64,000 bases of DNA from Klebsormidium nitens (taxonomy: Eukaryota > Plantae > Klebsormidiophyceae), in contig DF237101.1 of assembly GCA_000708835.1 (NCBI GenBank), forward strand, positions 89,516 to 153,515, written 5' to 3'. The notes beneath the pieces were generated by a model. The model worked only from the letters and a program-made list of their open reading frames with translations, made no database searches and was not told where the DNA came from. A program made the translations under genes and the position numbers. Shown here piece by piece: positions 2,375-34,583 of the stretch (position 1 is the first letter of the stretch; each line of letters begins with the position of its first letter).

Positions 2375-2573
2375 ACTGCGATAACTCTCGTGTGACCTAA
2401 GAGGCGTGTGACCTAAGATAGGCACCCGGGGGACGGGTGGGGTTGGTATGGTGGTTAGGGTGGGTTGGGGTGCGGAGCGGGTGATTATTTGTGTTAGGTT
2501 TTTAGTTTGAAGTGCCCGGGTAACTCGTATCTTAGGTCACACGCCCGTTAGGTCACACGAGAGTTACCGGTAT
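2375..2573 (+). mobile_element. Conserved-core, variable-TIR element, copy 1 (probable non-autonomous Mutator-like)
   Basis: About 39-bp TIR (TAACTCTCGTGTGACCTAA...AAGATA), shared G/T core containing GGGTGCGGAGC, perfect 9-bp TSD AGCCTCATG (2366-2374, 2574-2582). Confidence 0.85.
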
Positions 2574-2880
2574 AGCCTCATGCAGGTCAGCTGAGAAAGT
2601 GAGAGGTCGAGCAGAGCAGGTAGAGCTAGGCGTTTCCAATGCCCTTCAATTCAAGTTCACGAGCTCTTGAAGGCCCCACACAAGCGATCTCAGACTGGAG
2701 GATTGGCACAACAGTTTTGCCACATTGCAGCGCAGATTAACTCGTTCTCCGGTGAATTCAAGGAGCACCACCACCACCACCTTCAATTGACATCAGCGCC
2801 ACCACTTTCCTCATCTCTCCATATCAAGAAAGTTGCATCACAGCATTGGTGCATTCAATGTCAAATGCTGACACTTAGAA

Positions 2881-5800
2881 ATGGCGGAAGAAACGGAATT
2901 GGCTGTCAGCATTCCCTGTGCTTACACCATAGAAGCCCTCATCAAGCTCAAAGTGATCCGGGTGTTTGTGTACGCTAGGCTCGATTGCGTTCATGACCAC
3001 CCCCAGAACCAAAGAACCGAGTGCCAACTCGATAGCAATAAGGATAGCACTGAATGTCCCAGCTCAGTGGTTCCTTCTATGACTGGGGCTGAAGTTGCCC
3101 TGGTTGATAAGGGGGGAGCGACAGTCATCCAAGTTTCTATTGCGGACTCTCGAGCAGACTCTTGTAGAAAGCAACGTCGTATGATTTCTCTGCCGGAAGA
3201 AGTGGTGATTGACAGACAGTCTCTGAGTGTCATCGAGCGCCCCGACCACCTGGAGCTGAAGTTGCAGATTGTGGCATCGCTTGGTGAGGGCAACTGGGGA
3301 GCCGGGAGCAGCTCAAGCAACACCGAGATGAAGACGTTCCAGGAGAAAGGGTGCTTTGCATGTGGAGGGTGCGGACAGCCTGTAGTAGAACAAGGAATCA
3401 AGTGAGTGCTCAATCGATGACTACAAATGATGAGAGGCATGTCTCTCAGATTCTGACAAGTGTTTCATGCTAAGATCGATCAAGTGTCCCACACAAAGAT
3501 CTGTTGATGTTACTCACGAGCTTGTTAGCTAAAGTATGATTGACTTTTACATGCCTGTCAGCTAGTTGGTATTGAGCTGAAGCTATTAGTAAGAGGAGCT
3601 GAAGCTGTGTCATACCATGAAATTCGCAGACTACACATTTTGGAGAATCATTCCTTTTACTCGTCAGGATGTTGCGGCCGTCCCTGAAAGACCTCTCACC
3701 CAGCTAATGAACTATTCACCTGTTCCTTGGTGCGTAAATACTTCGATGGCTTTGGTGGACGAAATCGGTCTCACAGTGTCCCTGAGAGCTAGGCAGAGTT
3801 TCTGTTGCCAGGTTTCTAAGGCTTCGATCCTAGCACTGTGCTCCTCCAATATTGGATTATTTCGTATAGTGTCCACTTGCAGACTCCCTTGGCGGTTGTC
3901 AAAGACGCCTTGGACGCGTTCCAGCCACAGATCATTGTTGTCTCCTCCAATCTGTTCCATCTTGGGTTACATACAAGGACGGTATGAACAAGGACTTCCT
4001 GATCGAAGAAGCATAAAAGTTGCACTATCAACCCTGTCAATCAAGTACCTACCTCCTGAGAAGAGGCAATCTCTCGGCTCAACCGTCCAGCTTTCTCACC
4101 GCTTGAGTCCTGATTGCAGGCACTTCTTCCCGATGCCGTCTGAGAACTGGGAAGAGCTCGCAGACCACTGGTTCGATCTGCAATGTGGGTGCGGTGGGCC
4201 CGTCAAAGCTTCGAACCTGGCCCGGAAAGTGCAAGCGCGCTTGGTCCCAACTCGAGCCACGTGCCTCGTAGGCACCACGAGCTACTTGCTGCATGAAAGC
4301 GACCTTGTCGCAAGCGGTGGACAGAAGGAAAGGGAATGGGGCTCTCTGCCAAATGGCCTCCCGGTTGGAAACCAGCCTCTCAACACGGAGAGAGCAGTTA
4401 CGGAGTCGTTGGAAAGAAGCTCGAGCGATGGAGCTGGTTCTTCAGAGGGTGATGCCACGTCACGGGAGGTTTTGCAGCGGCGACGACAGAGTGTCATGCA
4501 TGTTACAGACGAGCAGTCGCTTTACAGTGCAGCAACAATGAGCCCTGCATTTGAGACGCCTGAGTCCGTTCCAATTCAACGAAACAACAGTCAGGATGAG
4601 GATTGTGAGCCGACCGCCTCCAAAAGCGAACCAAGCAACGAGTTCGACAGCAGTCGTTTGGACGAAGGAAGAGAAGAGGAGAGTGGTGTGGCTCCTGCTT
4701 CGTGCTGTGGACACGTGGAGTCGGCTGCTGACGTGGCAGTCGAGCTGGCGCCGGAACGCATTCAGGAGCTGGCAGAAGGGCCGATTGAGGTAACGAAAGT
4801 GAACACTGTGATTCCGAAGGTCTCTCACTTTTTCTCTTCCGGGCGAGGTTATTCATTGAGTGCTCTGTCCACTTATTCGAAGGTACTGCGCTTGTCTTTC
4901 AGGTGAATATTGCCTGTGCTTCGAGGAAGTTCTTCCCTATGCTTCGAGGAAGTTCTTCCGCCTCTATTCAATTTTTGGCTGCAGTCTTCTACGCATAGAT
5001 TCAAAAGCGTTTGTGATCCCAACGGTTATCGTCATTGTGACCTTCGCAGCATAGGGGCGAGCGTCTCAATCACTGCCGATCAGTATCCATGGGCTTCTTT
5101 GAACAGATTCTTGGACCTCCTCGAGGACCTTTACAACAACCACGTGACAAAGTGCCTATCTTTAGATCTTTCAGTTGCAAAGCATGAAAATCTGCAGTCA
5201 GTCGGTTGAAAGGGAACTTTCTCAAACGTGTCCAAAAGTGGGACTTCTCGTGAACCTCATCGAATCCTGATAAATCTCGTTAAGCCTCGTCGGCTTCCTA
5301 ATCGACTTGCAAACGGACGTGCAGCCGACCGAGCCCCTCACGGGCGCCCACAAGTGGATCCGCGTCCGTTGCCCCTGCTGCACGGAAACGCTAGGAGTGC
5401 GTCGAGCCACAGGTCAGGCTTCCTTCCGTTTCTTGCCCGTTCCGTTCCGTTGGTCGCCCAGGTCGGTTCATGCAGTGAAGCTGGACCTTGTACTTACACT
5501 GAGGATCCTCTTCGATCGGGGCTCCTTCTCTTGCCGCTCTCTGCAACCCCTTTCGAATTGAAAATCAACCTCACCAAGCCCAGGTTGGCTTGCCTTACCG
5601 ATGGTTGTATTCTTCTGATTCGTTGGGCCATTCCGCTCGTCCACTCCTCTGTCGGGACCACCGTTCCGTTCGCTTGATTCCCCATGCTGTCCCACGCTAG
5701 GCTCGCAGACGTGCGGACGAGCCAATCACCTGGAAGCAACACTTCCACTTTCTTCTCTGCGCCGCTTCCATGGAACTCGACACACCTTTGAAAGCTTGCG

Positions 5801-7237
5801 TTTCTTCCTACGTTGGAAGTTGCCCCGTGAACTGGAGCTAACGTCGGCATGACGTCATCCGTGTGCAGAGGACCAAACGACAGCCAGCCCAGGCGTGTAT
5901 CTTTTCAAGCACCGTGTGGTACTGTGCGGGGGAGCCTCGACTTCACCAAGTCGAAAGATCACGTGAGTCTGCATCTCGTCTGGCTTGTTGGGTAGAAATG
6001 AGTGCACGTGATCATAGTTGTTTTGCCGTCCTAATCTGCTAAAAGTGAAAAGCGCCAGCCTCTCGGGAATAACCGCTCTGCCCGTGTCACATCTGCCCGT
6101 GGTTTGATTCTGTAACCCCGCGTGTTAGAGGACTGTATTCGTGGTCCGCTCACTTCACCTTGGTCGTTGGACTTTTCAGCCAGAAGTTTTGCTTTCTCAG
6201 TGCTTCGTTCTGTTTTTGCATCGGTTACACCTGCATTGCCGGCGAACAGTTCAAATTCTGCCTCTTCAACGCTGTCCGTTCCTTCCCTAGGGCTTCATCC
6301 GTCTGCGGTTCTCACTGACTGTTCAAATCGCTCTGTTCAGAATCAGATACGGTTCGTTCGCTACTGCGACGAACAGAACCCCCCAGCCCGATTAGCAAAC
6401 GACAAATGAAACGTTGCTGTCTTCAGCTAATCCGCATCTCGTCTGCCAGGCGCGAGGCCCTGTTGGCACACTTCTCGGCACGGCTCCAGCAGGCCGCGGA
6501 GCAGAGCCTCTGCTCGCGCTTCCTTCTACAAGGCCTCCTCACCGGAAAGCCGTACTGCCACGTCACGGTCCTCAGCCGAGAGACGTTTGTCTGGAGCGGC
6601 CTTTTAAACGGGAGCGGCGACGGCAGCCAACGGTCGCAGGGTTTGAAGGTTCTTCTGACATACCCATCGGACGCCGTGGCGGGGTGAGTAAGAATCTGGA
6701 TTTGTATGTTGAGCAGACAATGCTCTTTTATTGATGGTGGAGAGAAACAGTGACCTACTCTCAGTTTTTCAGTCGTTAGGTCGACAATGCGTTTCGACCG
6801 GGTTGGTAAGGTACGGGAATCCAACTTTCGCAGGCGCGAGCGTACGAGTTTAGTTCACCAATCAGTGCCCCGAGTGTGAAGCGACCCATTTCGATTTGCC
6901 CAGGAGCGGAGTTGCCAAAAGCTGTCTGGTCATGGCACGGCTTCGTCTTCTTACATGAACATGGCTCAGATACGGTGTGCTGGAATTTAAGTGCTGTAGA
7001 CGCAGTTACAAATATTATTTGTCTCGTAGCAAAGAGCGGACTTCCTCGCTGGAAACACATACGGATTGCGCTTCCGCCTGCAGCACGCCCGCGGATCCGA
7101 AGCGGAGTAACCAGTTCGAGAGAGTCTTCCTTCTAGAGGACGACGCAGAGGAGCTGCTTCGCATCCTGGTCGCCAACAATGAGAAGTACCCGCTGTCGTG
7201 TCGAACCCTTAACCGTGCATCGCTGAGCTTCCTATAG
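2881..7237 (+). CDS. UBE3D: E3 ubiquitin ligase E3D-like protein (HECT_2 family), 6 exons, about 586 aa
   Basis: Exons 2881-3401, 4120-4789, 5325-5412, 5869-5962, 6450-6683, 7084-7237, all GT-AG and phase-consistent. Family motifs: CGGCGQPV, PMPSENWEELADHWF, VRCPCCTETLG, GVYLFKHRV, LKVLLTY and the C-terminal LRILVANNEKYPLSCR. Confidence 0.8.
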
Positions 7238-8897
7238 GGAGAGTACGAACCGTAGGCAGTTTACAAATCTTCGTAAGCTATCTTGGCAGCTTGACCTGGC
7301 AGCGGCGCTCAAGCTCCGAATATTGATCACCCGGAAGCAATGGGTCGACATACTATTTTCAGTCAATCGAAATATGACTCTATTGACCCGGATCCGGACT
7401 CCGACAAGGGGAAGGTCCTTGCTTCTCTGATTTACAGCCAGTCAGTTGTGTGTAACAAGATCTTGGTATCTAGCTCGACCAGGAGATTGACTCCCTGGCA
7501 CCAATCACTAGCGCACGGACACCCACTTTACATGCTCAACTACAATGTGCCGTTTAGTATTCAAGTCCGACTTCATGTTATTGCTTGGGAGGGGAAAAGC
7601 GGCGAGGCGCGACGGATGCCACGCCGCGGGCCATTCGCGCCTGGGCTGCGCGGCGGCCAATTGTAAGTAATGGAATTCTGTGCGTGCTGAACTGCATACC
7701 ACATGGCACTGTTCAATTAAGATTGGAGTCACGTACGTCAGCTACAGTCCGGAAAATTGATCGTCGGTATGATCTTTATGGTTAAGCTCACAGTGAGCTC
7801 AGAGTTTCATTGAGTTTCCGCTGGCCCATGCAGCGGTATTCGGGTATCAAGTTGTTACCGTCTCCAACATAACGCTTGCATGAAACGATATTGGCACTTT
7901 ACTTGGCATGGTACATAGGCACTTGAATGTGCGAGTTTTACGTGCGCGGGCCACAATCGATCACTGTAACACGTCCAAATGAAGCCGGACTCACCATGCT
8001 GCCATGAATTAGTATACATTCTTGTAAGTATGGCACGATTGCATGGCGGCTGCTTGGTGAGTAGGAGCCATGAGCCGGATTGAATGCTAGCTCGATTCAC
8101 TATCGACAGCCCTTGACTGATTCCTGTTCCTCATGAATGCTATTAGCAAGACGTCTCGATTTTCAGCAGCGCGCGGTATACATCGAAATTACATTCGATG
8201 CAGCCATGCAGTTGATCTGGAAATAGGTACTGTCGAGGCGTTATTCTTCAGGGCTTTGTAGTACGCGGCCGTGGTGAGTCCTGGACCAGTCTCATGGAAC
8301 CTCGCGATTTGCGCCAGGCATCCGAGATGTTCATCAGGCCTGGCAATTTCGATTGTAAGTCTACATTGTTAATTGTTTGACCAAATATCAGTCCTCTTTA
8401 GTACTTATCCGCACAGATTCGAAACTGAAACCTCGTTCATTGAACTGGTGACCTGAGCTCACATAACAATACGCGCTCTCGCTATTCCTGCTTGACTTTG
8501 AATTTTTTGACCCCGCAAGCAGCCCCCGCTGTGCAACTTGCGGCGCGCAGTGTGATCCAGTCTGTGCATGCAGCTATCCTCAGTACTGTCGCGCTCTTCG
8601 CTTTACCTCGCTTCACTTGCTTAACCTAATGACCGAGCTACTTGATTGATCTACGGTTCACATGGTACATTATGGACATACCGACAGATGCTTAAAGTTT
8701 GACTCTAATGCAAGCGCCCCTCATCCAAGCAAGACTGCTGTTTTGACGGATTTTGGTTGACGCGGGTTGGCACTTTTTCTACACCCAGCGGACATTTGGA
8801 CGCGCCTTCTCAGCAGCAGCCGTCGTCCGCAACAGAGAGCGACGCGTTGCCACTGGCGACCTAGTAACTGGAGTCCGACTTTGACGGTCCCCTCGCA

Positions 8898-9096
8898 ATA
8901 CCGGTAACGCCCATTTTACATGAGAGCCATTGCACTTAGGATCCAAGCTACCCGGGCGGACAAACTAAATTCCCTAACCAACAGCATCACCCGCTCCGCA
9001 CCCGAACCCATTCTAACCACCAAACTAACACTACCCGTCTCCCGGGCGCCAATCTTGAGTGAAATGGCTCTTAATCGAAATGGGAGTTACCAGAAT
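8898..9096 (-). mobile_element. Conserved-core, variable-TIR element, copy 2
   Basis: Reverse-orientation core; imperfect 40-bp TIR (GGTAACGCCCATTT.../...AAATGGGAGTTACC); same 199-bp length as copy 1; flanks CCCCTCGCA and TGCCTCGCA match at 7 of 9 positions. Confidence 0.8.
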
Positions 9097-9184
9097 TGCC
9101 TCGCAGACCAGGTAAAGGGGCGACCAAGGACTGCACTTGGAGGGGCAAAGCGTCGCCGAAGCCACGTGGGCGCCCACGCCCTCA

Positions 9185-12100
9185 TTACGTCAGCGCTCCT
9201 TGCTTGACGAAGCTCTTGATGGTGCTTACCAGCAACGGCATGTTGATCGGTTTCGTGAGGTACCTGGCATGAGGAAAGTAGCCAGGATGCTTGAAAGAGT
9301 CCCCGGAGCCTTCCATTATTTGCAGAAGAGAACCGACTCGCGTGCGTCGCAAATTGCGCAAAGGGAACGAACAAAGAAGGTGTCAAACGTGCCTGTTTTC
9401 AGAACGGGCAAAATTGGCCGGTCAACGATTCAAGGTCTCGTGATTCTGAAACGGGAACAAACTGCCCGTTTTTTTTGATATCGAAAGAGGGTGCCATCCG
9501 AGACGTCAGACTTTTTGTTAGAGCTTGAATCCACCCTGGCAGGACCGCTTTGCACAAGCAAGCATGGCGGCAGCATGGGTCTAGCGCGACTCCTTTTGTT
9601 TACTGACACACACTCGGCACCGCCGAAATGGATCAGAGCAGCCCAGAGTACGTCCCCAATTGTGATTAATCACCAGGGGTAGAGAAACATGCAAGTACAG
9701 AGGGGAAAAGACATTCTTCGTTGCTTAATACCTCACGTCTCAAGCCTCAAGCGGAAACTATTACAGCTTCTCCCGAGCAACCTGCCAGTTTTAGTGGGAA
9801 AATTGGTCTAAGTTAGTCAGTCTGCTGATGAGTGAAATTAGTCTAAGTTAGATGACACTAAAACTGGCAGGTTGCTCGGGAGAAGCTGTAATCACATAGA
9901 AACACGGCGCGCGTTTTCTCACCCGTCCATCCCGACCCCCAGGCACTTCTCTTTGTCAGTCGCCATTGCGTGCGCTGCACGAGAGCCACAGCGCAGATCA
10001 TAGAATCAGGTCGTCGCTTCCGGCAGGAAACTCAAGAAAGACAATAGTAAGCCGAGAGAATAGTAAGGTAACCGCACTGGGACGGGTAGGGTTGGTTTGG
10101 TGGTTAGTGTGGGTACGGGTGCGGAGCAGGTGTATTTTTGGGTTAGGGTTTTTAGTGTTAGTCGGAGCTTATCAGTATCTTGGCTTACTATTATCTTTCT
10201 TGAGAGTTATGCTTCCGGCGTTCTCGGACAGCCAAATGGTGGTCAATTCTCTTCTTACGTCTTTTTGCTGACAACCGGCGGAGGCGGTCACCCCACTCTA
10301 CTTACTAGTCTAGTAAATCCTGCTTGGTTGAGGGAAGAGCTTTCGTTGAAACGCGAGGTTAGATTCACGGAGCGAAAACCTCTACCAGCGAGTCAACTGT
10401 GATCCGTCACTGTTTCTTGTTTCTTCTTTGAAGAGACCAGCTAGTGATGCGAGGCTGCATCCCATTAATCGAAAGTTTCTTCGTTCTACAACGCGGGCTG
10501 CATCACAGGTGCTTGAAATAGAATAATGACGGGTAACACATTCAGTTACGAACCCTTCACTAAACAAGATAATGTACGGGATATTCAATCTGGGGTAAAC
10601 AAATAACGGGAGAATCGTTTAAGAGAAATCTTTGATGTTGGATATTTGCTGAATAACTCCTCCCCTTTCAGGAACCTCGCAAGACTTGGAACGTCGAAAG
10701 AAGGGACTTTCTGCTATGCTGACACTCCGTTCGAAGCCAACCATTGTTCTCGGGCCCACCGTGCCACAAAACAAACCGCAGAACAAATCCGGCACCAGAG
10801 GAGTTCCAAGGCCCAGAGTGGAAGCGAAAACTGCCAACGAGACTGATGCGCACGTGAATCCTCGATCCGCAAACGTTATGTTCTTTCCTGGAGCTCACCC
10901 GTTAAAGCTACGATGGGCACGTGCACTTTCTCCCCCTTCTCTAGTTCCCGGATCTCGGTCGTGGCGCCGTAGCCGTCCAGCACCGGCATCTGGCAGTCCA
11001 TGAGAACTAGATCGAAGCAGCCGGACGTCCGCAAGGCCTCGGCCAGGGCGTCCGCGGGGGGTCCAAATTCGGACAGCGAGGGAGGGGCTTTTTGGGCGTT
11101 CAGTTGGAGCTCCATCGCGGCCAAGATGGCGTTCACCGCCTGCGGAATACAAGAATTTCTGGAATAATTTTCTTGGGTCTATTCATCGGGAAACGGTGTG
11201 AAGAACTCGTCTAGTTCTTGGGATCCAGGAAATTGGGAGTTGGAAGTGCCGGGCTCTTCTCAACTTGAAGACTGCGAGATCAGAAGCGTTTTGGGGGCAG
11301 CTTGAGTCACCGTTGGCTCCGGCGCAGAGGAAAGAGATACTTTGACGTTGAGAGAGCATTTTCCAGGGAGCCAGACAGGGCTGTTATGTTGACTGGGGCT
11401 TCTTCGTTCAGCTTGCTCCAGATCTTACCCAATCTATTGCATAGACGGCCCTCCATCCCTGCCATCTGTGCCCGACGAAGCACAAAAAGCAAACCAGTAA
11501 AGATTCTCATTTTGGAACACATCCCAACAGTTTCTTGCCTATTGTGCACTGTCACGTAAACTGGAAGGGGCGGACAAGCGGACACCAACTCCGACTTTTT
11601 TCTTCTGAACACGACTCATCGCCAAATTCGCTCTTAAGCAAGCCTGTGTCATCTGTGGTGCTCCTCCACTCCGCAAAATCTTGGTCACCAGGAGCTTCTG
11701 AAAGAGGTATGACTCAAAACGCAGCTTTTCAAGCTATCCATAAAAGCTGTTTCCCGTCTAAGCAAATACACAGAGAGAAGAGAGCCAGCAATAAAACCTC
11801 TCTGGACATGCTTCCCATCCTATCTCCGTTTCAGAATTGGAAGCCCGAATGAAGTGATCGTGCTTGGCACTGCTTTGATCTCACCTGCCGCCCGTTCTCG
11901 ACCGCAAACACACGCGCCCCGACTCTGGTCAGAATCGTCGTCGCCAGCTTTCGCAGCAGTACCGTATCTTCCACGATCAAAATGTGCACACCCGCGAGCG
12001 GCAGGCCCTCTCCCCCGGGCTCCCCTCCAGGTTTGCCAGTCGCCTTGACCTTACCCGGTTGCTTCTCACCGGTCACCTCTTGACTGACGCTCGCTTCTGC

Positions 12101-18100: not shown

Positions 18101-20719
18101 TGAGTCAAATCGTTCACGCACTCACTCATTAGCGCGGGATCGTAAGTTCCGGTCAAGTCCGAGCTGGCGATGACTTTCTCGGTGTACGCCTCAGAAACAT
18201 ACAGGAGCCCCGCATGCTCCGGCCGAATGCTCGCGAGCAGCTGTGTGAGCGTGTCGGCGGTCGAAGTCCCGAAGGCAACCCCCAGGGTTGCGTTGCTAAC
18301 CGGGTCCTTAACCACTTGCGCAGATAGGAAGACCAAGGTGGTGTTCATTGCCCACTGCACCGGGAAAGGCACTGGTCAGGAAGACTCTTCAATTCAGCAA
18401 TGGTAAGCTTCAGCAATAGCAAGATAACCAGCCTGAGACGGGTAGGGTTACTGTGGTGGTTAGGGTGGGTTCGGGTGCGGAGCGGGTGATTTTGTAGGTA
18501 AGGTTTTTTGTGTTAGTGTTGAAGCTCACTATTGCTAGAGCTTACTATTGCTAAATTGAAGAGTTATCTGGTCAGGTCAACTGAGCTCATCATTCGCGCG
18601 GTTCTGATCGCTTCCGGTGGTTGAAGAAGTTGTGCTTCTGGCTGGCGACTTATCTTGATTGGGCTTCGCAAGCTTCGTGCCATCCATTTGGGTTGCAACA
18701 CTCTTCTGAGACTTGCCTTTCCTAGACTCAACTACCAAGTTGCACAGAAACGTGACACGTTTCTGGGCCTTAGCATTCGAGAACGACAAGCCAGATACTC
18801 AAAGCCCGAGACCTGTCTCCGTTGGTTCAGCTTTGAAAGAAGCATCTCAGAAATTCCTGTCGAGCAAAGTAAAGGATTGGCGGCCAGGCGAATAACCCCT
18901 GAAAGCGAGAGGGCTTACGATGAGACCCCAAGCCATGGCGCCTGTAGTCATCGTCTCCCTGTAGGGCTCCGTGCACCTGAAATCCGTGGTCCCAATAATA
19001 GCAAAAGGCTTCGCAGTCGGGTTGCCAAACGGGTCCACACTTTGAAAGTACAAAGGCACTTTAGTGATTCCGCTGGGGTCCCTCGGTGGGGCGCTCGACT
19101 GGTTGGCAAAAATGTGCCGGATTCTGCCGTCGTCAAACCGGCGGTAGCCGGTGATGAGGCCGTCGTGGGTTTGAAAATGGCACCAGCTGACGTTGGGGGA
19201 GGACTCGAGCGTGGACAAGATGAGGGGGGCAATCTGTAGAGCAGAGAGTAGGAAAGTAAGTGCTTCGATGATAGTAACCTGTCTTTCTTCTACGGTGTGA
19301 AGCTTAGCTACGGATCATTGACCCAAAAACGGTTGGGTGATCGTCGGACCCGAATATATGAACTGGGAGCTCAGAAAGGGTTGGACGGAACTCATGGAAC
19401 GATTGTTTTTGACGGGGTGCCTCTCGGAGCTAAGGCGTTTATGAGGACGTTGGGAGGTGGTAATGTACGGATTGTGTGGATTAGCTAGGAGCGTTCGTAA
19501 CAGGGAACCACAGCGCTGAAGGAGAAAGTTCTTGAGGAGAATGAGAACTTTGACACGCGGCAAAGCCGAATGCGGGACAGCCAAGAGGAATTTAAGATCG
19601 TAAGGTGGTCGAATCACAGAAGCTGGCAAGCGGCAACCTGCCGAAATTCATCCGCCTTGAGGCTTCCCTAATGAGGAGGAGCTTTGACTCCTTATACACT
19701 GACTCCAATAAAATGGCTCAAGCTGATGCGATCAAAACGGTCTAAGGGAAATCTGCTGAGACATAGAGCCTTTGAAGATCTCAGTTTGAGAGAAAAGACG
19801 ACACTTCCGTAGTTCTGCCTTTCAAATCCTTACCTCTTTCTCGATCACGCTGAAGTCACTCAAGTCAGCCGTCCTCATGCGTGGCGTGAGGGCGATCGTC
19901 GTGGCAATCTGCCTGGACATTCGTGTCGTAGCGCTGAGATACTTTGAAAAAAACTTTGCACCGAAATCCAGTGAGTGCGCCTGATTCTCCTTAGTCAGCC
20001 GCTCAATGTTGCGACGGGCCACAAAATCCATCTGATACCAAGTCGAGTAGGCCATGGCTGCGATGAGCACACACATGAGTACCTATGCGCAGAACGGAAG
20101 CAAGTGGTGCGACGTCATTAGAAACACAGCATCTTAGCCGAGTACACAAGTCGCTCAAGTGTGAGAATGTATGAAGGATCTTCAACTCCCTCCATCTGAC
20201 ACATGGCAGCAATGAGTGCAAATGCTCACAATGCAGTTAAGTACACGGACTGGTGAAAATCGATCGGAACATAAGATGAGGTAGCTCACAATGTCTGCGC
20301 GACGTTTTTTTGGTCACGTGAAACAAGACTTTGAGCTAGCACAGAGCGTCGGAGATTTAGAAGTGAGATGAAGCTCTGAAGGCAAGCTTGGCTGCACACC
20401 TCTGTTGCCGTCGTTGTCTCATCAGCGGCCATTGGCTCTTGCAAAAGAGCCTTCCTCGCCACGTTTGCACTAATCTCAAGAGCATACCAACTCAGATGAG
20501 ATACATTTGCAAGAGAAATTGCAAGAACAAATGGAAGAGCGTCTACTGCAGACCCAAAGAACTCCTTACCATGATCCCCAGCCTAGTGATCAAGACCATA
20601 TGGTCAAACCCCCCGGTTTTGCGTCCCAGCGATACGGACGTTCGCATCTCCTTGGCCTGCACGACCACTTGGGTGACAGTAGTACTACCACTCCCTTCGG
20701 GGAGATCCTTCGAAGCCAT
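9185..20719 (-). CDS. Membrane-bound hybrid histidine kinase, AHK1/CKI1 type (TM, extracellular domain, TM, HisKA, HATPase_c, degenerate receiver, receiver), 13 exons, about 1273 aa
   Basis: Exons 20719-20570, 20082-19834, 19233-18919, 18354-18126, 17224-17112, 16355-16073, 15706-15582, 15019-14813, 14431-14248, 13479-11885, 11139-10899, 9974-9923, 9263-9185, all in phase. H-box MSHDVRTPL, N-box QILANLVGNAVTFT, G1 FEVDDTGVGIP, G2 GGYGLGL; receiver ILIVEDT...LMDCQMPVLDG...ALTAHAM...YLTKPI. The exon-5 donor could instead be at 17130. Confidence 0.93.
9764..9888. mobile_element. Tc1/mariner-type MITE, 125 bp, in the last intron of the histidine kinase
   Basis: Perfect inverted repeat 9760-9796 / 9856-9892. 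Ends read TA|CAGCTTCTCCC...GGGAGAAGCTG|TA (TA target duplication). Internal direct repeat GTCTAAGTTAG occurs twice. Confidence 0.85.
10025..10210 (+). mobile_element. Conserved-core, variable-TIR element, copy 3 (intronic)
   Basis: Core present; about 30-bp TIR (AACTCAAGAAAGACAATAGTAAGCCGAGA); perfect 9-bp TSD GCTTCCGGC (10016-10024, 10211-10219). Confidence 0.88.
15005..15197 (-). repeat. Three tandem units of about 64 bp spanning a splice acceptor of the histidine kinase
   Basis: The unit CCGTGCGCTTCGGACGTCCAG|GTTGAGTCCGGCAAG appears three times with small changes. Confidence 0.9.
18381..18567 (+). mobile_element. Conserved-core, variable-TIR element, copy 4 (intronic)
   Basis: Core present; about 40-bp TIR (ACTCTTCAATTCAGCAATGGTAAGCTTCAGCAATAG); perfect 9-bp TSD CTGGTCAGG (18372-18380, 18568-18576). 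Confidence 0.88.
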
Positions 20720-22096: not shown

Positions 22097-22160
22097 TCTC
22101 ATATTGATATTGATATTGATATTATATCAATAACATTATTGAGTATTAATATATATTGCA
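22097..22160. repeat. Short AT-rich (ATATTG)n microsatellite-like tract
   Basis: catattgatattgatattgatattatatc in otherwise roughly balanced-GC DNA. Confidence 0.6.
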
Positions 22161-23075: not shown

Positions 23076-23872
23076 TCAACCCTTCCCAGTCATGGCATTT
23101 GCCACCTGGACGCACAAAGGATGCACATTCGGAAGAAGGTCAAAGGTTACTGCTCTGCACTGGAAGGCCTGTTACGGAGATGACATTTTTTATCTTGCAA
23201 AAAAGTTGCTGGAGACCAAAAGCACGTGTCCTACCTTCTAACCATACCCAACAGAATCGCAGTCACATTCCGATGCTCCCTTAAAAGACGCCTGCCACTT
23301 CCATCTGTCCAACGCCCTTTTAAAGATACCGCTGCTTACCTGTGCTGGCCTTGGCGGGGTCACTTTTTCAGCTCCTAGGGCATTCCGGATTGGTGGTACA
23401 ACAAGGGGAAGGGCGAGTCCTGTAAGGCAAACCTGAGCTGAGACTGCGAAGGATGTCAAGAACAGAGAATCCCTGTGGGGCCTTGTCCTTGAGCTTCAAA
23501 GGAAAGACTGGTGAAGAAGCTAGAAACATGACCGTAGAGCACGGCCTTTGAGAGCGACCAGTAGAGAGCATCAGAACACAGCAGTGCGACAAGCTTCGTC
23601 TCCTGCTCTTAACTTTTTAAACCAATTCATTGTTGATACAATGGTGGATGTCGTCAGAAGGAGATCAGCAAGGAGAAAGCATGTCAAAGAACAGCCAGAA
23701 GCAGATTGGTCCTTTACGTAACGTGGAATTGACAGGCAAAACCCTGAGAGGCTGTGATGTTAGAGCGTTGCGATCCACACTTCCACGCACCTACTAGTGA
23801 GATCCCGCACGACCATACCACCACCGGCTCTCTGATCAGCGCATGACGTAGCCAGCCCCCCAGGCTAGCCAT
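23076..23872 (-). CDS. NDUFA3: Mitochondrial complex I subunit B9 (NDUFA3/NI9M family), 3 exons, 63 aa
   Basis: Exons 23872-23791, 23419-23340, 23105-23076 give MASLGGWLRHALIREPVVVWSCGISLVGLALPLVVPPIRNALGAEKVTPPRPAQVANAMTGKG. The EPV..WSC...G...P.VVPPIR signature, single TM segment and size all fit. Confidence 0.8.
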
Positions 23873-25249
23873 GGCCCCCAGTCCCTTCAGCAACCGTCGC
23901 GCCCGCTTTTTGCGTTGGTTTTTGAGCGGGGGCAAGCGTCCAACCTGATTCGTGAAAAGTGGGAATATCAGACTTTGCACCGTTGCATGATTGGTGGTTC
24001 TGCAGCGCATGTGAGATGACCTACATTTTGACCAATCAACGACTTTGTGCGTGCGCACTCCGCCATTCTTTGGGCCCTGCATTCGTGTAAGCACTGGCGA
24101 GTACAGTGTCTCTGACTGAACCTGGCAAGGCTGCTCAAAATGATCACATTTCATAGCCTTACTCAATATGTTGAGTGCGTCTAAGGGCGCAACAGGTCAA
24201 CATCTATCTTAAATACCACTCAAGCAGTACTCGACTAACTACCAACCGATCAAGGCGCAGAAGGAAGATTCTCTGACCTCAATAAGGGGCACCTTGACGT
24301 CAAGACTGGAACGTTGAGGCAGCAGGGCGAAATCTGCCGCAGAACAGTCGGAACCTGCAGTGCTGCTTTCACCTGGACAAACAGCAATTCTGTAAGACTA
24401 AGAATCTGCTGAGCATCTGATCATCATCAACCTGAAACGTTTCTACGTACAGACATATCCGGCAGGAGGATAAGTAATCTAGTTTTAGAGAAGCAAAAAG
24501 GATCCTTCCTGCTGAAATGATCACTCAAAGCGGAGCCTCACCTGACCCTCACCGCCTCCCCAGCCACCTGGACAAGGGCGCCTCCTCGTAGATCCTATGC
24601 AATTTACTAGTCATGTAGCATTTCTGCTTGGAAGAGCAACGTTCGATCACAAATATAAAGTTAAACTGCTGAAAGGAGATTCCTTTGTAAGGAATTGACA
24701 CCAGGTTGACGAGCGTTGCCGTTTCAAAGAACGTCTCCATAGAGGCTAAAGGACTAAATATGGCCTTGATAAGCCATATACCGTTCTGACGGTTCTCAGA
24801 CAACCCCAGGCATCCCGTCGTCTTGTGCCAAACGAAGTTCGGCCCCTGGATTTTTGCAAAGTCTGTCCATCTTTACGTCTGCATTTGCAGCTTAACTAGC
24901 TAGGCGATGCCTCGCTGTGCATCGCACATGTCACCTTCTCTATGGCGCCCCCTCAGGTTCAACATCCCTGATAGATTCAGCAGCTTCTACATAGGGGGAA
25001 CGCCCCAGCAGATGGTTGCAGCCATTCTCCAGCATCCCCGCGCCTTCTCTGCAGCTGACACTTTGGCTTCAGCCAGCTTTGTTGAATTTCCGATCAGGAG
25101 CAACTAAAAGTTCAGGCAGGCACTGATTCAAGCACTCTTATGCCCCGAAAGCCCTTTGCGTGGGGCTTGCTCGGGAGCTCCCCATGATGAATGGGAGCAG
25201 TAGCGTTCGACGTAGCCCATTGATTGCCATTTCAGCTGAGACTATAGCA

Positions 25250-28200
25250 ATGGCAGTTGCCACCACTAGATTTCAACCTTGCTCCAGCACTAGTCACTTG
25301 GTCCTCATACAGAGCCTCGCAGCAAGCCACTGCTGGGAAGAGTCGTCGTTTACATCTAGAAAGATACAGTCAGGCTGGCTGCAGTTCTCCAGCTCCAGGA
25401 CCAACACCGACTGGTTCAGGTCAAAGTCCAAGCCCATTCGCGCCGCAAGAAAAGTAAAGGTGAATGCAGCAGCTGCGGGAGCTGATTGCAGCTCCAGACG
25501 AGAAGCGAGGGCGCCGGCTTTGGACTCACAAGGGGTGCCCGTGCAGACGAGGAGACTTTTGTGCCTCAGCAACGGGCATGGGGAGGACGCAATTGCAGTG
25601 GCTATCCTCAAGGCACTCAAGGTGGGCAAGCAAAGGTAGTGCCTCTGCGCAAGGCCCGCTGGAACTCTTGCGACAGGAGCTTGAAGTTTCTGTGCGGTTG
25701 TAGGTTGCATTGGCTGGGTTGAAGACCCCAGCGGGCTATTGGTCACAGCATCTGGGTCTGTGGTTAGAAAACTTCGAACATTGACCCCACTGCCTGAATC
25801 GTAATCAGTGGAGGATCGGTTGTCACAGTTGATCGCGGTTCGTTGCAGTCACCCACCTTCGTCCAGATTGTGCAGTCGAAAAGAACCACAGCGCAAACAC
25901 AAAGATATGATAATCACAATCTGTGACGGTGATGTCATCGTGCTTCTCCAGCACGCTTCAGCAAATCTTTACCTATCATGGAATTGCGATTCCCTCACGT
26001 CTATGTGCCCCTCATCCCTCACCTTTACATGCCTGGCATCTTAGTACAACGAGCATGCTTAACTTGATCTGTACGACCTTCAAGACCTCTGCTGTGCTTC
26101 TTTCTTCTCCTCTCAATCATTCACATTTTGCTTCCACCCCCCTCCTCGCCCCCCTTCTAGGCAAGTCATTCTGCCACCCCCTTCCGCAGGAGTTAGCAGA
26201 GGAGGAGGATCAGCCCCTGAGCATCGAAGCGCTTCCCTTGGTGGGTTTGGGAGGGGCGTACGTCAGGGCAGGGATCCGGACCATCGGGCCCGCTCAGATG
26301 ATGCCAAGTGGCGGCTTCTTGTACATGGATCGCAAGCAGATCGTGGGGGACCTCCAAGCTGGGCTTATGGCGCTCACATGGGAACAGGTACGTCACCTCC
26401 TGCGGGTGTTACGTTACATACGCTTTCCCCCTTCTTTCCTGAGTGCAGTGAGTCGTCACGAATGTGGGAAGAACGAGGTTCTGCTTACTTACTCTACAGG
26501 TAATGACAATCAATTACTCGCTGCCATATAGGAAGAGTCGTCATACCTTCAGGGTTTAGTCTTAGAAGAATGTAAATCTGAGACCCACTTGAGAAAGGTT
26601 CATGCAAGATACAACTCTTGAGAGGTCCCTTCAATGAAAGCCGGAAGACTCCGTCCTTGTCTGTCAGGTTCAAGGCCGTCGTCAATTGGCCCTGATTCGC
26701 TGAGCTTCCCATTCTGTTGAGCTCTCAGACTGTTGGGTCTTTTTGTTTTACTTCCAAACGGTCAGTCGAAAGATTCTTTTCAGAAGCTTCACGAGTAAAC
26801 AAATTGTGTGGTAGAATCTGAAGACCTGGTGTATCTTTGGACGCTTCTCGTGATCCACTTGGTACATGGATGGCGTCTCTTTGTTGGACAGGCCCTCTTG
26901 AAAGTCACCATTCCGCAAGGAACGTGGTTGCTTAACAATCCAATTTTCGCTGCCTGGTTGCGCCAATCCGTCACACCACATTGCCACCCTGTTTGCAGTT
27001 AACCACCCTGGTTAAGTGGACCCAAGCGGAAAGTACCGAGAGGGCGACCAGCGCATTGCTTGCCGTGGGAGACGTTCTGCCACTCGCAATGGCGTGGGTC
27101 GCCTCCAAATACGAGAAAACGAGGCGGGAAAAAGACAAAGGCGGGCGGCTGGTCCCGTACGCTTTTGTGGGCACCGCGAAAAGCGAGTTTTACGTCAAGG
27201 AATTAGATGGGAGGAAGCTTGTGCCAGAGAAAAGGGACGCAGGTGAGGTTGTGAAATGCGAGAACAGGGCTGTGAGGATGCAAGAGATAAAGATTGCTCA
27301 AATTTCCAAATTTCCAATCTTGAAATTCGATTCTATACCAGAGACCAAAATCAGCCCGAAAGTCAAGCATGCAATACCCTGCCGACATTTAGTTTTCCGG
27401 TTGTACATCAACTTCAGTGCGGAAGTTTCTTGATGGTTAAGGATTATCTGGTTCGTGTGCAAAAGTATTCGTTTGCAAGCTGATCTAGAAGCAAACCTCG
27501 AAACCCAAAAGCAAAACGGTTACGAGATTTCTTTCAAAATGCACCAGCTTTCATGTTCGGAGGGTCGAGAAGCTGCTCCATTCCGCCTGGGCTGTCCAGA
27601 AATCCTGAACGAACTCATGGACTCACTAACATTGGAATACGAAGTTCGTCACATGTTCCGTTCGAAGTCGGCAGCACTTCGAGATCTGGAAGTTCGTCCT
27701 GTATTTCATTCGAGTCGTAACACCCTGAAACCTGGAAATTCAGACTTCAAAAAGAGAGCTTACTATGACTCCCCTGCAGTCGAGAAGCTGCTCTCCCCTG
27801 CCTGCGTCCACCTGCCCTGGGAGCGCGCGCTGATGTCAGCGGACGAGTGCGCGTTCACAGCGCCGCGGGACGCACTCACGGGCGAAGTGTTGCGGACGCT
27901 CCTGCCGGACGGTGTGAAAAGGCGCGTCCTCGATTTGGGCAACCCAATGATGGACGATCTGGCGCCGACGGGCGCCTTGGACGGGGTTCTGGCAGGGTAT
28001 GAGGGGTTTAGGCGCGTGGCGATCATGCCGGGGTCGCGCCCTCCTGAGGTGGGTGAGATCGGCTGGCGAGGATGTAGAGGGTGTCGCGTGGTCCAACCAA
28101 GGGCATTGTGTCGAGCTTCTAAATAATGGAGAGCTTGTGTTCCTCAGGGAAGCAGCTGACAATCAAAGGCCAATGGAGAAGACGGACCGAGACTTGGGCG

Positions 28201-30533
28201 GCTGTTGTTCCTGGATTGCCGCTCGAAGGTCATCGACTGTGCATCAAGCGTCTTTGTGAATCGGATGTTTCGTGACTGTTAGGTACCTGCTTTGAACAGA
28301 AAGCGGAAGTCGAGAACCCGGTACCTTTGTCCTTGCATTTGCAGTGCAACCTTTGTATAAGCAACATGTAAGTCAGCTTCCGTTGAAAAGCTCTCTTTCA
28401 AGAGCTCCGGTTTCCACAATTGTAAACCCGTCAAATCTGCACGCATTTCTGTTTCTGAGCTTTGAAGGATCAAACCCTTGAGCTTATGAGGGTCTGGTGT
28501 TGAAGAGTGCGCCGTCATGTCCGCAGGTCCATAGAAACTTTGACACGCTCCTTTCCGCCGCGGATTCCGTCGCCCAAAGCTCGCCACACGAGCGCTTCCT
28601 CTTCCTGGCGCCTGTCGTTCCCTCGCTGGAAGTTCGGCCGTTTACAGACGCGCTCGCTCGCAACGGCTGGCAGCGAGCGGAGGAACCCCTAGAACTCCCC
28701 GAAATTAGCGGCGCTTGTGAGTCGCCAACGGAACCGCTTGTGGATGCGTCGGATGAGTCGCTCGAGCGAGGAAACGGCGGACCTTTGCAAGGGGGGTGGT
28801 CAGAGGACGGTACTTCGGAGAATGGTGTAAGAACGTCCGTAAGGTTTGAGAGTGCGTCGACTTTGAAAGAGAGTGAGCAGAAAAACGGAAATAAAGTTAG
28901 TGCTCGATTACGAGAGCAAGCAGAGCACGCGCAAAGTAGCACGCAACCAAGCGACGGTCCTAGTAGCACCTCGCAACGACCTGATGCCGTAGAATGTAGA
29001 GATCCAAAACCCACCGGATCCGTTAGTGGACCCTCTCTAACCCGAACGCAGAACGAACATCTGGACGACGTCGTTCCGGAGCCTTTTGCCGCAGACGGCG
29101 GCGGCTGGCCGGAGCCTTCGGAAGGCCCTGTTTCGAGCATACTCTTCCGAAAGCGCGGGGGCGACTCGGCGGTTCTGCTGGTTCGCGGGGCCTTTGCGGA
29201 CTGCGCGCAGCGGGCCGAGGCGGGCCTGGCGATGGCCGGGACAGCGACGGAGCAGATGGTAAGGGTTTACTGTTTGAATCTAGCGATTGTGGTATGGATT
29301 TGAGAGGTTTAGGGTTCGGGGTTTTGGGTTAACCGTTTCTACCGGCAGCAGCCACAAAACTTTCCGAGCGCTTTTCAAAGCTTGCTTCTGCAGTGTGTTG
29401 CGATGCGAGCAGATTTTGATTGTCCAAACATTGCCATCATTTTCTGCGTCACCATCAGCAGGTCGATGGCAAGGGAGCATCTCGCAGAGCATACATGCTG
29501 GACTTTGCAGAGGGCTCGGGTGACATTTCAAGTGCCCGGTTGCTGCAGGTCGAACTCGCTTAACATTTGATTGGCTCGGTTAACATTCGACGTGCTCGGT
29601 TAACATTCGAAGTGCCCGGTTCCTGCAGGTCGGGCTCGGAAAGCCGGTCTTCACCATGCCCGGGGGAGGGCCCCAGTTTACCTTCGCCTTTGCGGAGGCG
29701 CAGTCGCGGCTGCTGGGTCATTCGGTGAGTCTCGTTCGTTGAGCTCTCAGGGTCTCCTCAATATCCGAAAACATTTTATGTCTCGGGGTGCTTAGGTGAC
29801 GGTTCTGCGGACACATACGCTCGCCATCTGCATATTGATCCGATGGTGACTCGGATTCAGCTTTCGAAAGTCTACTGATGTCTGGATCACTCGGGCTTTA
29901 AGTTTCGTCACAGCATTCGCTCACCCCGATCTCATCGTTTTCTGTCCTTATTGACGGGCGGACATGTCTTACAAACGTTCCCTATTACCGGCCGTTACAA
30001 AGAATCAACCCACCACTAAAGATTGGAAATCCACAATAATTCTCAAATCTCGCCAGCCTCCTGCCTCGTCAAGCTTTCGTTTCTTGAAGTCTTTCTGACC
30101 CCCGTTTTCCCAGGACAACATTGATAGATGAAAGCACTCGTCTTGCGCTGCGTTTCTGCGGCTTGGCTGCAGCCATAATTCGATAGTCCCGTAAAGCAGA
30201 GCTGCAACGGACGAGAGTCTGCGGTCTAGAACGTTCCTTCGTTTGGTTGTCCTCAACTTTGGCGCTTGTATGGAGAAGATTTGACACATAGCCTGATTGC
30301 TGCTATACATATCCAACTCGCAGGTCATCCTCTGCAAATCACCATCTGAGGTGGGGCCTTGCTTTCGGGAAATCTTTTTTGACGAAAGGCGGCTTGCTGA
30401 GATTCGAGAGGATGGGCGACAGCGGATGGGACAGGCCGGCGCGTCCAAGCGCATCGCCCGAGCGATCTGGGATAGGCTGCTGGTCGAAAACTGCACGCCC
30501 GAACTTTCTGAGATAATGACGAGAAGACATTGA
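25250..30533 (+). CDS. Lipid-A-disaccharide-synthase-related protein (TIGR03492 family, GT-B-like) with a probable plastid transit peptide, 7 exons, about 706 aa
   Basis: Exons 25250-25621, 26190-26387, 26999-27242, 27780-28048, 28527-29258, 29629-29724, 30324-30533, in phase. Family motifs: LLCLSNGHGEDAIA, MPSGGF, YAFVGTAKSEFY, LPWERALM, GNPMMDDL, MPGSRPPE, AMAGTATEQMVGLGKPV, GPQFTFAFAEAQSRLLG, RMGQAGASKRIA. Confidence 0.9.
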
Positions 30534-31268
30534 CAAGGTTACAATCAAAGTAAGCACAGTCAAAGCGGACGTCAAATCGCAAGCTGTCGCCAAAGTATGT
30601 TTGAAAGAATATGGATAGGAGGATGCGCGTTTGCTATTTGCGGCATGTTACCTAATGTATCAGGTGGCCGACGGTTGCCAGCGATCTGATTGGATGCCTG
30701 TTAGGCCTTCTACGCTCATCGATCCACTAGGTTGCGATGATGTTGTGCAGCATTTACCATGATCAAGTGGTCATCAGTGCAATCAGGGATATATCATCGG
30801 CATCACTGATGCTAGACTGCGTAAGAGAATCTTCAACGCGTGCAGTGCAGTTTTGCAGGCTGCGGTATACACGTCTTTCATATTCTGGGTCATGATGCAA
30901 TTTACAACTCAAGTTACATGTGGTTTACTTGATAACTTCCTTAACAACTTGAACCGTTGTACAGCGGGGCCGGAGCTGGCCGTTGCCAACTTCTGCTTCG
31001 CATGATATGCCGCATTCAAGAGGCCGCAAGTCGTTTGTGACGCATCCGCTTGTGGTATGCGAGCTAGGTCATCATGGCAGGCATGCTATTCGGGCTATGC
31101 ATTTTTACATGGTCCAACCATACCAATCCGTATATATACGGTCATCCAAGAATGTGGTCGGCTGAAGTTAGCTTCTGCCCAGGCAAACATGGAACAATCA
31201 AAGCAGAGAATATGCAATCCGCGAGCTTCGAAACAACGAAACGCTCAGGATCTGTCTGTATCATAGTG

Positions 31269-33842
31269 CTACAGGAGCAGGTGCTTCAGCATGTCGAGGC
31301 CGGTATCGTACGCATCCAAGCAGCGAGCGACCTCGGCCAGCTGCTTCTGCCTCGACCCTAAGATGCTCCTAAACTCGAGCAACTGCGCGTCGTAGCTGGC
31401 CTGGATGCACGTCGAGACCTCTCGAAGCTGCTTCCCCTTGTTGCCCCTCATCTCAGAAAACTCCAGGGCCTGTCTGTTGTAAGCAGCAACCGCCTGAGGG
31501 AGGTTCTGGCTGTCTTGCTCGGAACTGCGTCTGTCGCTTTGGGATGTGGACACGCAGGCTGGCTTCTGCTCGCGATCGGGACGCGCCGAGAAGTTGAGCT
31601 CTACGCGGTCCTCTTTGGGAGGCAACGTTCTCGTCCTACATTGACGAGTCTTAGTCAGAAGTGGTCCAGAAACAAGGGGCGTTCCGCGCGTCCAATCCGG
31701 ACTCTCGATGTCCAATTCGTCCGGAATTATTCAGCCGGGCTTCAGCTGCCGTCAATCGAAAGCTTCGATCAGGAAATCTCTACAGCCGTGTTAAGATGTC
31801 AATGGTGTTCAGGAGATTAAAAGTAATCAATTGCGGAAGTGACAACTTGTCTAAACTTAATTCCTCCATGCCATTCAGAAAGCACTTCTGAACAGGGTTT
31901 ATGGATACGTACGTAACGAGCAAATAGACGGTCAACAAAAAAGAGCAAAGATATCGGGTTCTGGAAAGACATGGTAAAATGATGCTTCTTCGTGGTGTGG
32001 TATGCTTGAAGTTTCTGATGAATGCGCGAGGAAAAGGCTGATCGATTCACAACAATCCAGTCAAAAATGGTGCGTTTCGGCAAAGGTGTATCCAGGGAGC
32101 AGCCACACATTCGCAGCATGAGCGTAAAGGCCACAAGTAGGTCAGTGCTTTCCTCAAGCGGACAATTGATTTTTCGATGCAATGTTTCAAACTTCGTAGC
32201 TCCAGGTTCAGTGATTCCAGAGCAAACACATTGCAGTATGTTCTTGCAGACTCCCATCTTCGCCAGCTCACCTTTGGCCAGAAGTACTCTTTAGCGTGGC
32301 GGTCTTCTTGAAGGAACTCTCCAAGAGAGAAAGGAACGAGTTGCTGCTTGAGTTTCTGACAAGCCCTGTGATTCGGAGGATCTCTGGTAGTACACTCTTA
32401 CGGAATCTGGCCATCGTGGAACTAAGCACGAGGGGCTGGAGCTCTGACCACTCTAGCAGATGTTTTGGCTGCATGCAAGCTGCAAGAAGAGAAGCAGAGT
32501 AATTACGAAGGCTGCGGAAAGGATGTAAGAATTCGAAGGATACTGTTGACCTTCTGCTTCTCTTCAGGGGAGGGATGTGAACGGTTCGCTCTAAAGCGAA
32601 GATAACAGCTTTGCTTGAGCTACAGCTTTCAAAAGATGGAATAGAAGTTCGGTAACCTCGACACAATCTGCGCAGGAGCATGTGGAGCAAGCAAGCGGTA
32701 ACACTTGTCGAGATACGGGAAGGAACACGGTCTATGATCGTTTTCGCTTACCAGCCAGGACCTCGAGAAACCATTGAGCGCAGTCCTTGTCCGAACCGCG
32801 CAGGTCTGAAAGCGCTTGTGGAACGGGAAGCCTCTGAACCTGCGTAAGTATTTGCAGAGACGCCCGCTGCTTCGTTCTGGATCTTTGCATCCAGGCTTTG
32901 AAGCCTTCACAAAGTTTCATTCGATTGAATCGAATTTAATGAGCAGATGGAGGAACATTGCACGAAGTGCACAGCGTCTTCCAGAAGCGTTGTGCACGTT
33001 TCCTCATTTGTGATTACAAGATGTCGCTATCTGTTGGCTTACTTTGGCCTCGTAAACGATTCTCTGGTCTGTCTGAAACGTCGGACCAGCTTTTTTAGGC
33101 GGGAGTGGAGGACGACCCCCCGAGAACTGTCTCCGCTTGCCAGCACTCCCGAGAACGGATTGAACGTCAGCAGCCTCTTGCTGCAGAATGGAAAACGACT
33201 GAGTTCGTTCAATCAAAACTCTTTCAAAAATTCGAAAGTATTGGACATTTTTGAACAGCTTAAACTCCTTGACCTTCACAACGGAAGGAATCCATTACTA
33301 GATGGTACCCTTGCACATTTTCATTGTCCACCATGTCCAATGTTTGAATGATCGGAAGCGAAAAAAGAGAATGACGCGGTGTTTCTGCATAAGCCGCTCG
33401 TTCAGGTTATGAGGCCGGGCGAGGCTTTCTGCGAAGCAAGCTCGGAATCATTAAATGGACGCAGTTCTCGAGAGGTCAACCAGAGAATCGACTGCAAAAG
33501 TTGCTTTGGTATCTGTTGTTGGAAATCGGGAGATTAGTCACGCAGTAGCCAGACTTGACCTTCTGTAGCAAAATCCTCTCTTCCTCTTACTTCACGAATC
33601 CGCCTGCATCTGCCTGGAACGTAGTAGTTTTCACGTACACGAAGCCATTGCCTTCGAGGGTGAAGCATGCGTCATACCTGCTCTTTGGCTCTTCTTTCAT
33701 GGCTGTGTTGTAAGGCTTTGAAAGCATCATGATTCTCTACAGTCTTCTCTTCGCTGTAGCCTGTCTCCAAAGGCGAGAGTGTTCTTGCGAACGGACTGCT
33801 AAACTTTCTTTTCCTTTTCTGAGGCTCAGAGACATCCCCCAT
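31269..33842 (-). CDS. Tentative multi-exon gene of unknown function
   Basis: ATG at 33842. Candidate exons 33842-33678, 33180-33043, 32839-32752 have good gtatg/gtaag donors and compatible phases. Further open blocks lie near 32519-32275 and 31505-31269 (helical C-terminus). The middle exons could not be joined with confidence, and I recognise no family motif. Confidence 0.4.
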
Positions 33843-34392
33843 TCTCACCAGTCACCAACACATTTAGCACAAGCTCCCCACAAGCTCTAGTCAACAGTTG
33901 GATTGAAGCAGTTGACGAGACCCGGAGAACACTCATCGCGTCTTGCAAGCCTCTTGCCTTCGGTCATCTATCGTCTGCAGTCTCCTTGCAAATCCCCTTT
34001 CAAAACACGGCTTCAAAAGTAGCGGAAGCCAGTGGCATTGGAAGGAGCTCAGCTCCACAATCCTTCTTTCCTCTCAAGGCGGATTGTGCAGACATTCAGA
34101 CAGAGCTGTTGGTAAGTGTTCTGAATGCCGAAGTCATCGATCGACAATGAAAGCTTAGAGCAGGGCTTGGCTGGAAACTTGAAAGCTAGACGCGAGCTGA
34201 GCTGTGAGTCGAGCGTCTGAAGTATAGCCTATAAGATTACGTCAAGTGTAAGTTTGAATCTCGTCCAATCAGAAAATAACGTGTCGCCTTGCCGACCACG
34301 TTGACCACCTAACACTCAATGTCATTCGTGCCTCATCATCATGAGGCCTAGACCCTTCTGCAATTTGCAGCCATGCCAGGCCGGTGCCTCTG

Positions 34393-34583
34393 ATGACACG
34401 ACATTTGAGGAATAGTAAGCTTTTGGAATACCGTAGTAAGCTCAAACCAAACACTAAAATCCTAACCTATAAAAAGTACCTGCTCCGCACCCAAACCCAC
34501 CCTAACCCCCAAACTAACCCTATCCGTCCCAGGCTGGTGAGCTTTCTATTCCTAAAGCTTACTGTTCCTACATAAAGTGTCAT
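34393..34583 (-). mobile_element. Conserved-core, variable-TIR element, copy 5 (older, TSD not recognisable)
   Basis: Reverse-orientation core; degenerate TIR ATGACAC...GAGGAATAGTAAGCTTTTGGAATA / CTATTCCTAAAGCTTACTGTTCCTA...GTGTCAT. Confidence 0.75.

Follow-up and report, generated by a model that had tools for sequence, protein, structure and literature searches.

Theory places the information of a miniature inverted-repeat transposable element (MITE) in its ends and regards its middle as filler. A stretch of 64,000 nucleotides from the streptophyte alga Klebsormidium nitens (GenBank assembly GCA_000708835.1, contig DF237101.1, positions 89,516 to 153,515 of the forward strand), analysed here over its whole length and called the window, holds a group of small elements that show the reverse. 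Which parts of such an element are constrained, and what could keep them so while the ends change from copy to copy? Six copies in this one window are the material of the whole analysis. They have in common a G/T-rich core and arms that pair within each copy while differing between copies, and several are flanked by 9-bp target-site duplications (TSDs). The reading that we favour, on balance the probable one, is that of a foldback-type MITE family mobilised by a DDE transposase cutting with a 9-bp stagger, which would need the core and a few conserved arm features, while the rest of the arm drifts.

Copies and target-site duplications

The five complete elements, of 186-199 bp each, lie exactly where the original prediction had placed them. 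A hidden Markov model (HMM) of the core, a check suggested together with that prediction, was run on the window and gave E values of 1e-14 to 5e-18 for all five, recovering in addition a sixth, decayed copy on the minus strand (46738-46803, E 1e-7), which extends over about 46690-46849. The 11-mer GGGTGCGGAGC, said to be common to the five copies, has exactly five occurrences in the window, one in each complete element, and sites within at most one mismatch of it number seven against 1.25 expected. The copies are as follows, coordinates being those of the window.

c1, 2375-2573, plus strand: arm class A, 199 bp; core 2432-2506; TSD AGCCTCATG at 2366-2374 and 2574-2582, a perfect 9-mer; module CGTGTGACCTAAGA, four occurrences
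c2, 8898-9096, minus strand: arm class A, 199 bp; core 8964-9039; TSD 8889-8897 against 9097-9105, 7/9 match; module CCATTTCAC.TAAGA, four occurrences
c3, 10025-10210, plus strand: arm class B, 186 bp; core 10081-10156; TSD GCTTCCGGC at 10016-10024 and 10211-10219, a perfect 9-mer; module AAGA.AATAGTAAGC
c4, 18381-18567, plus strand: arm class B, 187 bp; core 18437-18511; TSD CTGGTCAGG at 18372-18380 and 18568-18576, a perfect 9-mer; module T.AGCAATAGTAAGCT
c5, 34393-34583, minus strand: arm class B, 191 bp; core 34453-34528; module.AGGAATAGTAAGCT
c6, 46690-46849, minus strand: decayed class-B copy, absent from the earlier list; core 46738-46803; module AGTGAATAGTAAGCC

Small size, inverted repeats, TSDs, six copies in 64 kb and the lack of coding sequence are all features of MITEs. 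The duplications are as had been predicted, perfect 9-mers at three copies (c1, c3 and c4) and a 7/9 match at c2, and agree with the 8-11 bp, typically 9, of Mutator and Mutator-like elements (MULEs). No recognisable TSD is found at the ends of c5 given above, both of which read ATGACAC, and none was seen at c6, whose inner left arm is deleted and whose far end is uncertain. By the measure of arm pairing (78%), decay has gone furthest in c2 among the five complete copies.

Arm classes and arm anatomy

On the G-rich strand, to which the description of arms and core refers, an element consists of a left arm of 55-57 nt, a core of 75-76 nt and a right arm of 54-67 nt. By the boundaries drawn here the conserved core is shorter than the approximately 85 bp first proposed. 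The arms fall into two classes, between which their identity (0.46-0.54) is that of random 56-mers (0.48 +/- 0.05). Class A, formed by c1 and c2, has an arm identity of 0.67, a common terminus ATACCGGTAACTC and an inner CCCGGG, while class B, formed by c3, c4, c5 and c6, has identities of 0.60-0.73 and the common motif AATAGTAAGC, which is borne by the decayed c6 as well. The claim that arms differ strongly between copies needs correcting to the extent that not all of the arms are unrelated.

Despite this divergence a single arm plan is found throughout: a 13-nt terminal part is followed by a module X1 (positions 14-29), a module X2 (positions 30-45) and, innermost, a remaining stretch. In nine of the ten arms the strongest direct repeat within the arm begins at position 14-16 and recurs after exactly 16 nt; 11-14 of 14 bases match in eight of these nine, and a repeat match of 12/14 is reached in 1.2% of random 56-mers. 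Across all classes arm position 1 is A, usually as the start of ATA(A)C, and TAAG occupies positions 24-27 and 40-43. The hexamer TAACTC, reported near the ends of four copies, is present there as such or as a one-base variant in c1-c4. The element-specific part of a module is its first ten or so bases, which are repeated in the four modules of the element (c1 CGTGTGACC, c2 CATTTCAC, c3 AGA.AATAG, c4 AGCAATAG, c5 AGGAATAG and c6 AGTGAATAG). Module identity averages 0.79 within an element as against 0.34 between elements, a difference unreached in 5000 permutations. Even a single base can recur in this manner, as the difference between c4 and c5 at the module start (AGC and AGG) is repeated in almost all of their modules. 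The 3' ends of X1 and X2, however, stay distinct in c1 and c2 (TAAGAG as opposed to TAAGAT), which indicates that the tandem pair is ancestral and that the concerted change is limited to part of the module.

Two further observations concern the termini. In c1-c4 the terminus lying 5' on the G-rich strand deviates from ATA(A)C, while the opposite terminus conforms, and the two ends of these copies may differ in function. Class-A elements contain the terminal motif GGTAACTC (in c2, GGTAGCTT) a third time, just inside the right arm and adjoining the inner CCCGGG (window 2519-2526 in c1 and the corresponding place in c2).

Pairing and covariation of the arms

Over the outer 45 arm positions, left and right arms pair at 77% within a copy as against 36% when arms of different copies are combined, and pairing drops to 22-26% when the arms are slid by 1-3 nt. 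At 34 of the 45 positions at least two different paired base types occur among the copies. The expected behaviour of the arms, pairing within each copy and differing between copies, is therefore confirmed and accompanied by strong covariation. In the complete elements 78-93% of the arms is paired, and whole elements folded as DNA hairpins stand out from shuffled sequences (z = -10 for c1, z = -6 for c4). The modules nevertheless co-vary in tandem, so that hairpin pairing in a single register does not explain them; pairing slipped by 16 nt is seen in c1. Nor do the arms act as structure only, as the original prediction supposed, since the terminal motif, the fixed 13+16+16 nt geometry and the invariant TAAG anchors are all kept.

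A different origin of this regularity has to be considered at this point. In inverted repeat-direct repeat (IR-DR) ends, for example those of Sleeping Beauty, each inverted repeat contains two transposase sites in direct orientation, and the arms described here are like them in having two direct repeats per inverted repeat at a fixed spacing. In the main rival explanation the modules would be sequence-specific transposase sites of this IR-DR type and the arm classes would derive from different autonomous Mutator-like lineages. The core would then have spread by recombination at the core and regeneration of matched ends, or MITE lineages would have re-tooled their sites for other transposases. 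The two direct repeats per arm with their fixed spacing, and with a constant TAAG half next to a class-specific half, do resemble bipartite protein sites. The direct repeats of IR-DR elements are, on the other hand, conserved family-wide, whereas here the first ten or so bases differ per copy, and TSD and superfamily differ also. Recombination of the required kind has a precedent in maize, where Mu elements swap terminal inverted repeats (TIRs) and internal parts with one another and then re-form matching ends (PMC10401008). Among the copies in the window, however, none is heteromorphic, with a left arm that fails to match the right. Furthermore, the module variant is different in all six copies, in some by the one recurring base, which would make too many specificities for one protein each. 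We consider this explanation doubtful. With a module variant of its own in every copy, one cognate protein for each is implausible, and a copying process within the element would be needed.

The conserved G/T-rich core

The core is 0.79-0.87 identical between copies (mean 0.83), so that the middle is indeed more conserved than the arms, as first noticed. Its divergence is independent of arm class: core identity is 0.830 between copies of the same class and 0.833 between copies of different classes (r = 0.02, Mantel fraction 0.52). Most variants in the core are found in one copy only, and the distance of a core to the consensus (0.07-0.16) exceeds the decay per arm, put at 0.04-0.12 from the arm mismatches, by a factor of about 1.2 to 2.8. 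This comparison was made on five copies with local alignments and takes the arms to have been perfectly paired at insertion. On this evidence the source cores appear to have been close to identical at insertion, at a time when the arms were already different.

One explanation for a core sequence that is independent of arm class is that the core is a separate module inserted into the loops of pre-existing palindromic MITEs, or that it has been homogenised, without any function, by ectopic gene conversion. A nested insertion was rejected, as the geometry does not vary (left arms measure 55-57 nt, and the modules occupy the same positions in both classes) and as the window contains no element that has these arms, or modules so spaced, but lacks the core. 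The core also lacks a TSD of its own, and its private variants argue against ongoing conversion. An origin of either kind is hardly credible.

The consensus core is 84% G+T, with eight G3 runs, three TAGGGT heptamers and one canonical G-quadruplex (G4) motif with loops of 1, 3 and 8 nt. The canonical G4 motif is kept in c1, c4 and c5 and lost in c2 and c3, from which the heptamer motifs have already disappeared as well, and the G4Hunter maximum ranges from 1.28 to 2.08 among the copies. The consensus core could form a G-quadruplex, as suggested, but the motif is gone from several copies. The core alone shows no Watson-Crick structure (minimum free energy 0 to -2 kcal/mol, z near 0), and having no structure of its own it would form an open loop in a hairpin or cruciform. 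Its description as telomere-like goes too far, the likeness being limited to the three isolated TAGGGT heptamers of the consensus. The telomere unit of Klebsormidium is TTTTAGGG (PMC3622300). An interstitial telomeric array was rejected, since these isolated heptamers are all that the core offers in place of a tandem array of TTTTAGGG. A 21-nt pattern of the core, searched against metagenome, prokaryote-genome and viral collections, returned 146 loci, none of them homologous by nhmmer. The proposal that the core is the recognised cis-element is still viable.

The composition of the core could also reflect a role in the host or at the RNA level, for instance as a telobox-like site for telomere-repeat-binding proteins, a G4 regulator, or a splicing-related or small-RNA element, host selection then retaining the copies close to genes. 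This would suit the heptamers, G3 runs and G4 motif of the consensus, the open frames downstream of c1, c4 and c5, which begin at distances of 88 to about 300 bp, and the word CAGGT lying at most 30 nt from four of the five complete elements. The private core variants, however, resemble neutral decay after insertion, the G4 and heptamer motifs are gone from c2 and c3, and the CAGGT enrichment reaches a P of about 0.05 only, when corrected over all 5-mers. In addition, splicing would in no case remove an element so as to restore a frame, and none of the elements matches Rfam. Such a role is therefore very unlikely to account for the conservation of the core. A tRNA or known RNA family was likewise rejected as the identity of the elements, which have neither a tRNA nor an Rfam match.

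A probable foldback-type mode of transposition

In the explanation favoured here the copies would be non-autonomous foldback-type elements, moved by cut-and-paste through a DDE transposase encoded elsewhere; no transposase is found in the 64-kb window. The enzyme would make staggered cuts 9 bp apart and hence most likely be Mutator- or Foldback-like. Each element would be a hairpin-forming unit, its arms surrounding an unstructured core of 75-76 nt. The machinery would require the invariant features only, that is the terminal bases, the spaced TAAG anchors, the self-complementarity of the arms and the core, the last of which may provide a platform for binding or enhance transposition, perhaps in the form of a single-stranded or G4-prone loop. 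The remaining arm positions would be free to change, and the four modules would be kept alike by copying within the element, for example through mismatch repair of a hairpin whose arms pair in register and also with a 16-nt slip, or through slippage. Each lineage would in this way drift to an arm sequence of its own, while selection for mobility would keep the core. While the anatomy, the TSDs, the covariation and the arm-class-independent conservation of the core are established for these copies, the type of transposase, the function given to the core and the way in which the modules are homogenised are inferences.

Several points weigh against this explanation. The putative Mutator assignment has TSD length as its one basis and no autonomous partner beside it. 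The distinct 3' ends of X1 and X2 would be erased by a simple homogenisation of whole units. The local alignments used in the decay argument understate arm decay, and the claims of core selection and arm diversity draw on a sample as small as six copies. Finally, the binding protein, the G4 and the hairpin intermediate are all predictions.

A more radical version would have the core recognised as a loop. A transposase or host factor would read the single-stranded core loop of an extruded hairpin and cut at a set distance from it, and the arms, re-copied inside each element from one 16-nt module so that each lineage gains arms of its own, would be irrelevant bar a few anchor bases. We regard this version as unlikely; if true, it would amount to loop-recognised, structure-guided cut-and-paste transposition in a eukaryote.

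Comparison with known elements

The closest parallel is found in the coral MITEs (CMITEs) of Acropora described by Wang et al. 2010 (PMC2872659). In these the inner portion, of about 75 nt, varies less from family to family than do the TIRs, of which the terminal CCYT alone is kept, and the authors put forward a role for that inner portion in transposition, as something required for it or aiding it. Like the elements described here, CMITEs are small, non-coding and bounded by TIRs, conserved inside, and keep a short terminal motif. They differ in being about 100 bp long, with TIRs of 13-14 bp and TTAA TSDs, and in belonging to a piggyBac-type group in a coral. The algal elements measure 186-199 bp, have varied 9-bp TSDs and ATA(A)C termini, and combine a G/T-rich core with arms of 45-55 bp built of two co-changing tandem 16-bp modules. 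They are an analogue of CMITEs in another superfamily and kingdom, and not a member of that group. An undescribed mode of mobilisation, put forward on the strength of the inverted pattern of conservation, is not supported, as the coral CMITEs show the same inside-out conservation (PMC2872659). The pattern itself is unusual but already described, and what is new here is the common arm plan of a terminal part and two tandem 16-bp modules with a fixed TAAG.

With Mutator-like elements and Mutator-derived MITEs, among them the Foldback (FB) elements, the family has the 9-bp TSD in common. The Mu families, however, have long conserved TIRs and a variable interior, the reverse of the present case, in which ATA(A)C and TAAG are the only parts of the arms kept family-wide at an otherwise random level of identity between classes. 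FB elements contain tandem sub-repeats in their arms, as do the elements here with their two 16-bp tandem modules per arm, and both FB and Mutator-like elements resemble them in a tendency to sit near genes. The long variable arms of FB elements nevertheless enclose a loop that is little or not conserved, unlike the 75-76-nt loop that is the best conserved part of these copies.

Introners, the intron-creating DNA transposons of other algae, also invite comparison as short TIR elements with TSDs in an alga. The present copies differ from them in having AGGT in none of their TSDs and in not being spliceable to restore a frame. An introner origin was rejected for these copies, since no long frame spans the empty site and removal of the element together with one TSD restores no frame.

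The family would be the second, independent of CMITEs, to show that in a non-autonomous transposon the constraint can fall chiefly on internal sequence. Its four co-varying modules per element form a compact natural system for the study of concerted evolution inside a 190-bp element, and can also reveal the bases that a transposase actually reads. For repeat annotation the consequence is a practical one, as clustering based on TIRs would split this family into many small ones.

Flanking sequences and other features of the window

No paralogy was found between the flanks of different copies, which are unrelated apart from the 13-mer CAGGTCARCTSAG. This has three exact occurrences in the window (2355-2367, 2583-2595 and 18573-18585), all at most 20 nt from c1 or c4, and at both copies it reads Q-V-S/N-stop, closing an open frame that reaches the insertion site. 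The 5' splice-site-like CAGGT is represented by five sites within 30 nt of the four complete elements concerned, as against 0.46 expected, always on the plus strand of the window regardless of element orientation; its adjacency is taken as a lead only.

Upstream of c1, the interval 1511-2261 opens with a run of N that marks an assembly gap (1511-1802), after which comes a large palindrome that is almost perfect. The arms of this palindrome (1851-1950 and 1978-2077) are 98% identical and are enclosed by outer arms at 1803-1833 and 2097-2127, and a word of 17-23 nt has further copies at 1526-1548, 1929-1951, 1978-1994 and 2245-2261. An intact open frame for a 463-aa F-box/LRR protein occupies 41663-43054 on the minus strand, and has one relative only in a collection of 5.8 billion proteins, 69% identical and from a Logan assembly. 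Two other elements with inverted ends occur in the window. The first, of 133 bp (9760-9892), lies between c2 and c3 and has perfect 37-bp inverted ends and a 59-bp loop; it shows no homology to the core and no clear TSD. The second (62599-62793) is an AT-rich element of 195 bp with perfect 25-bp inverted ends, apparently flanked by TA, and is probably a MITE of the Tc1/mariner type.

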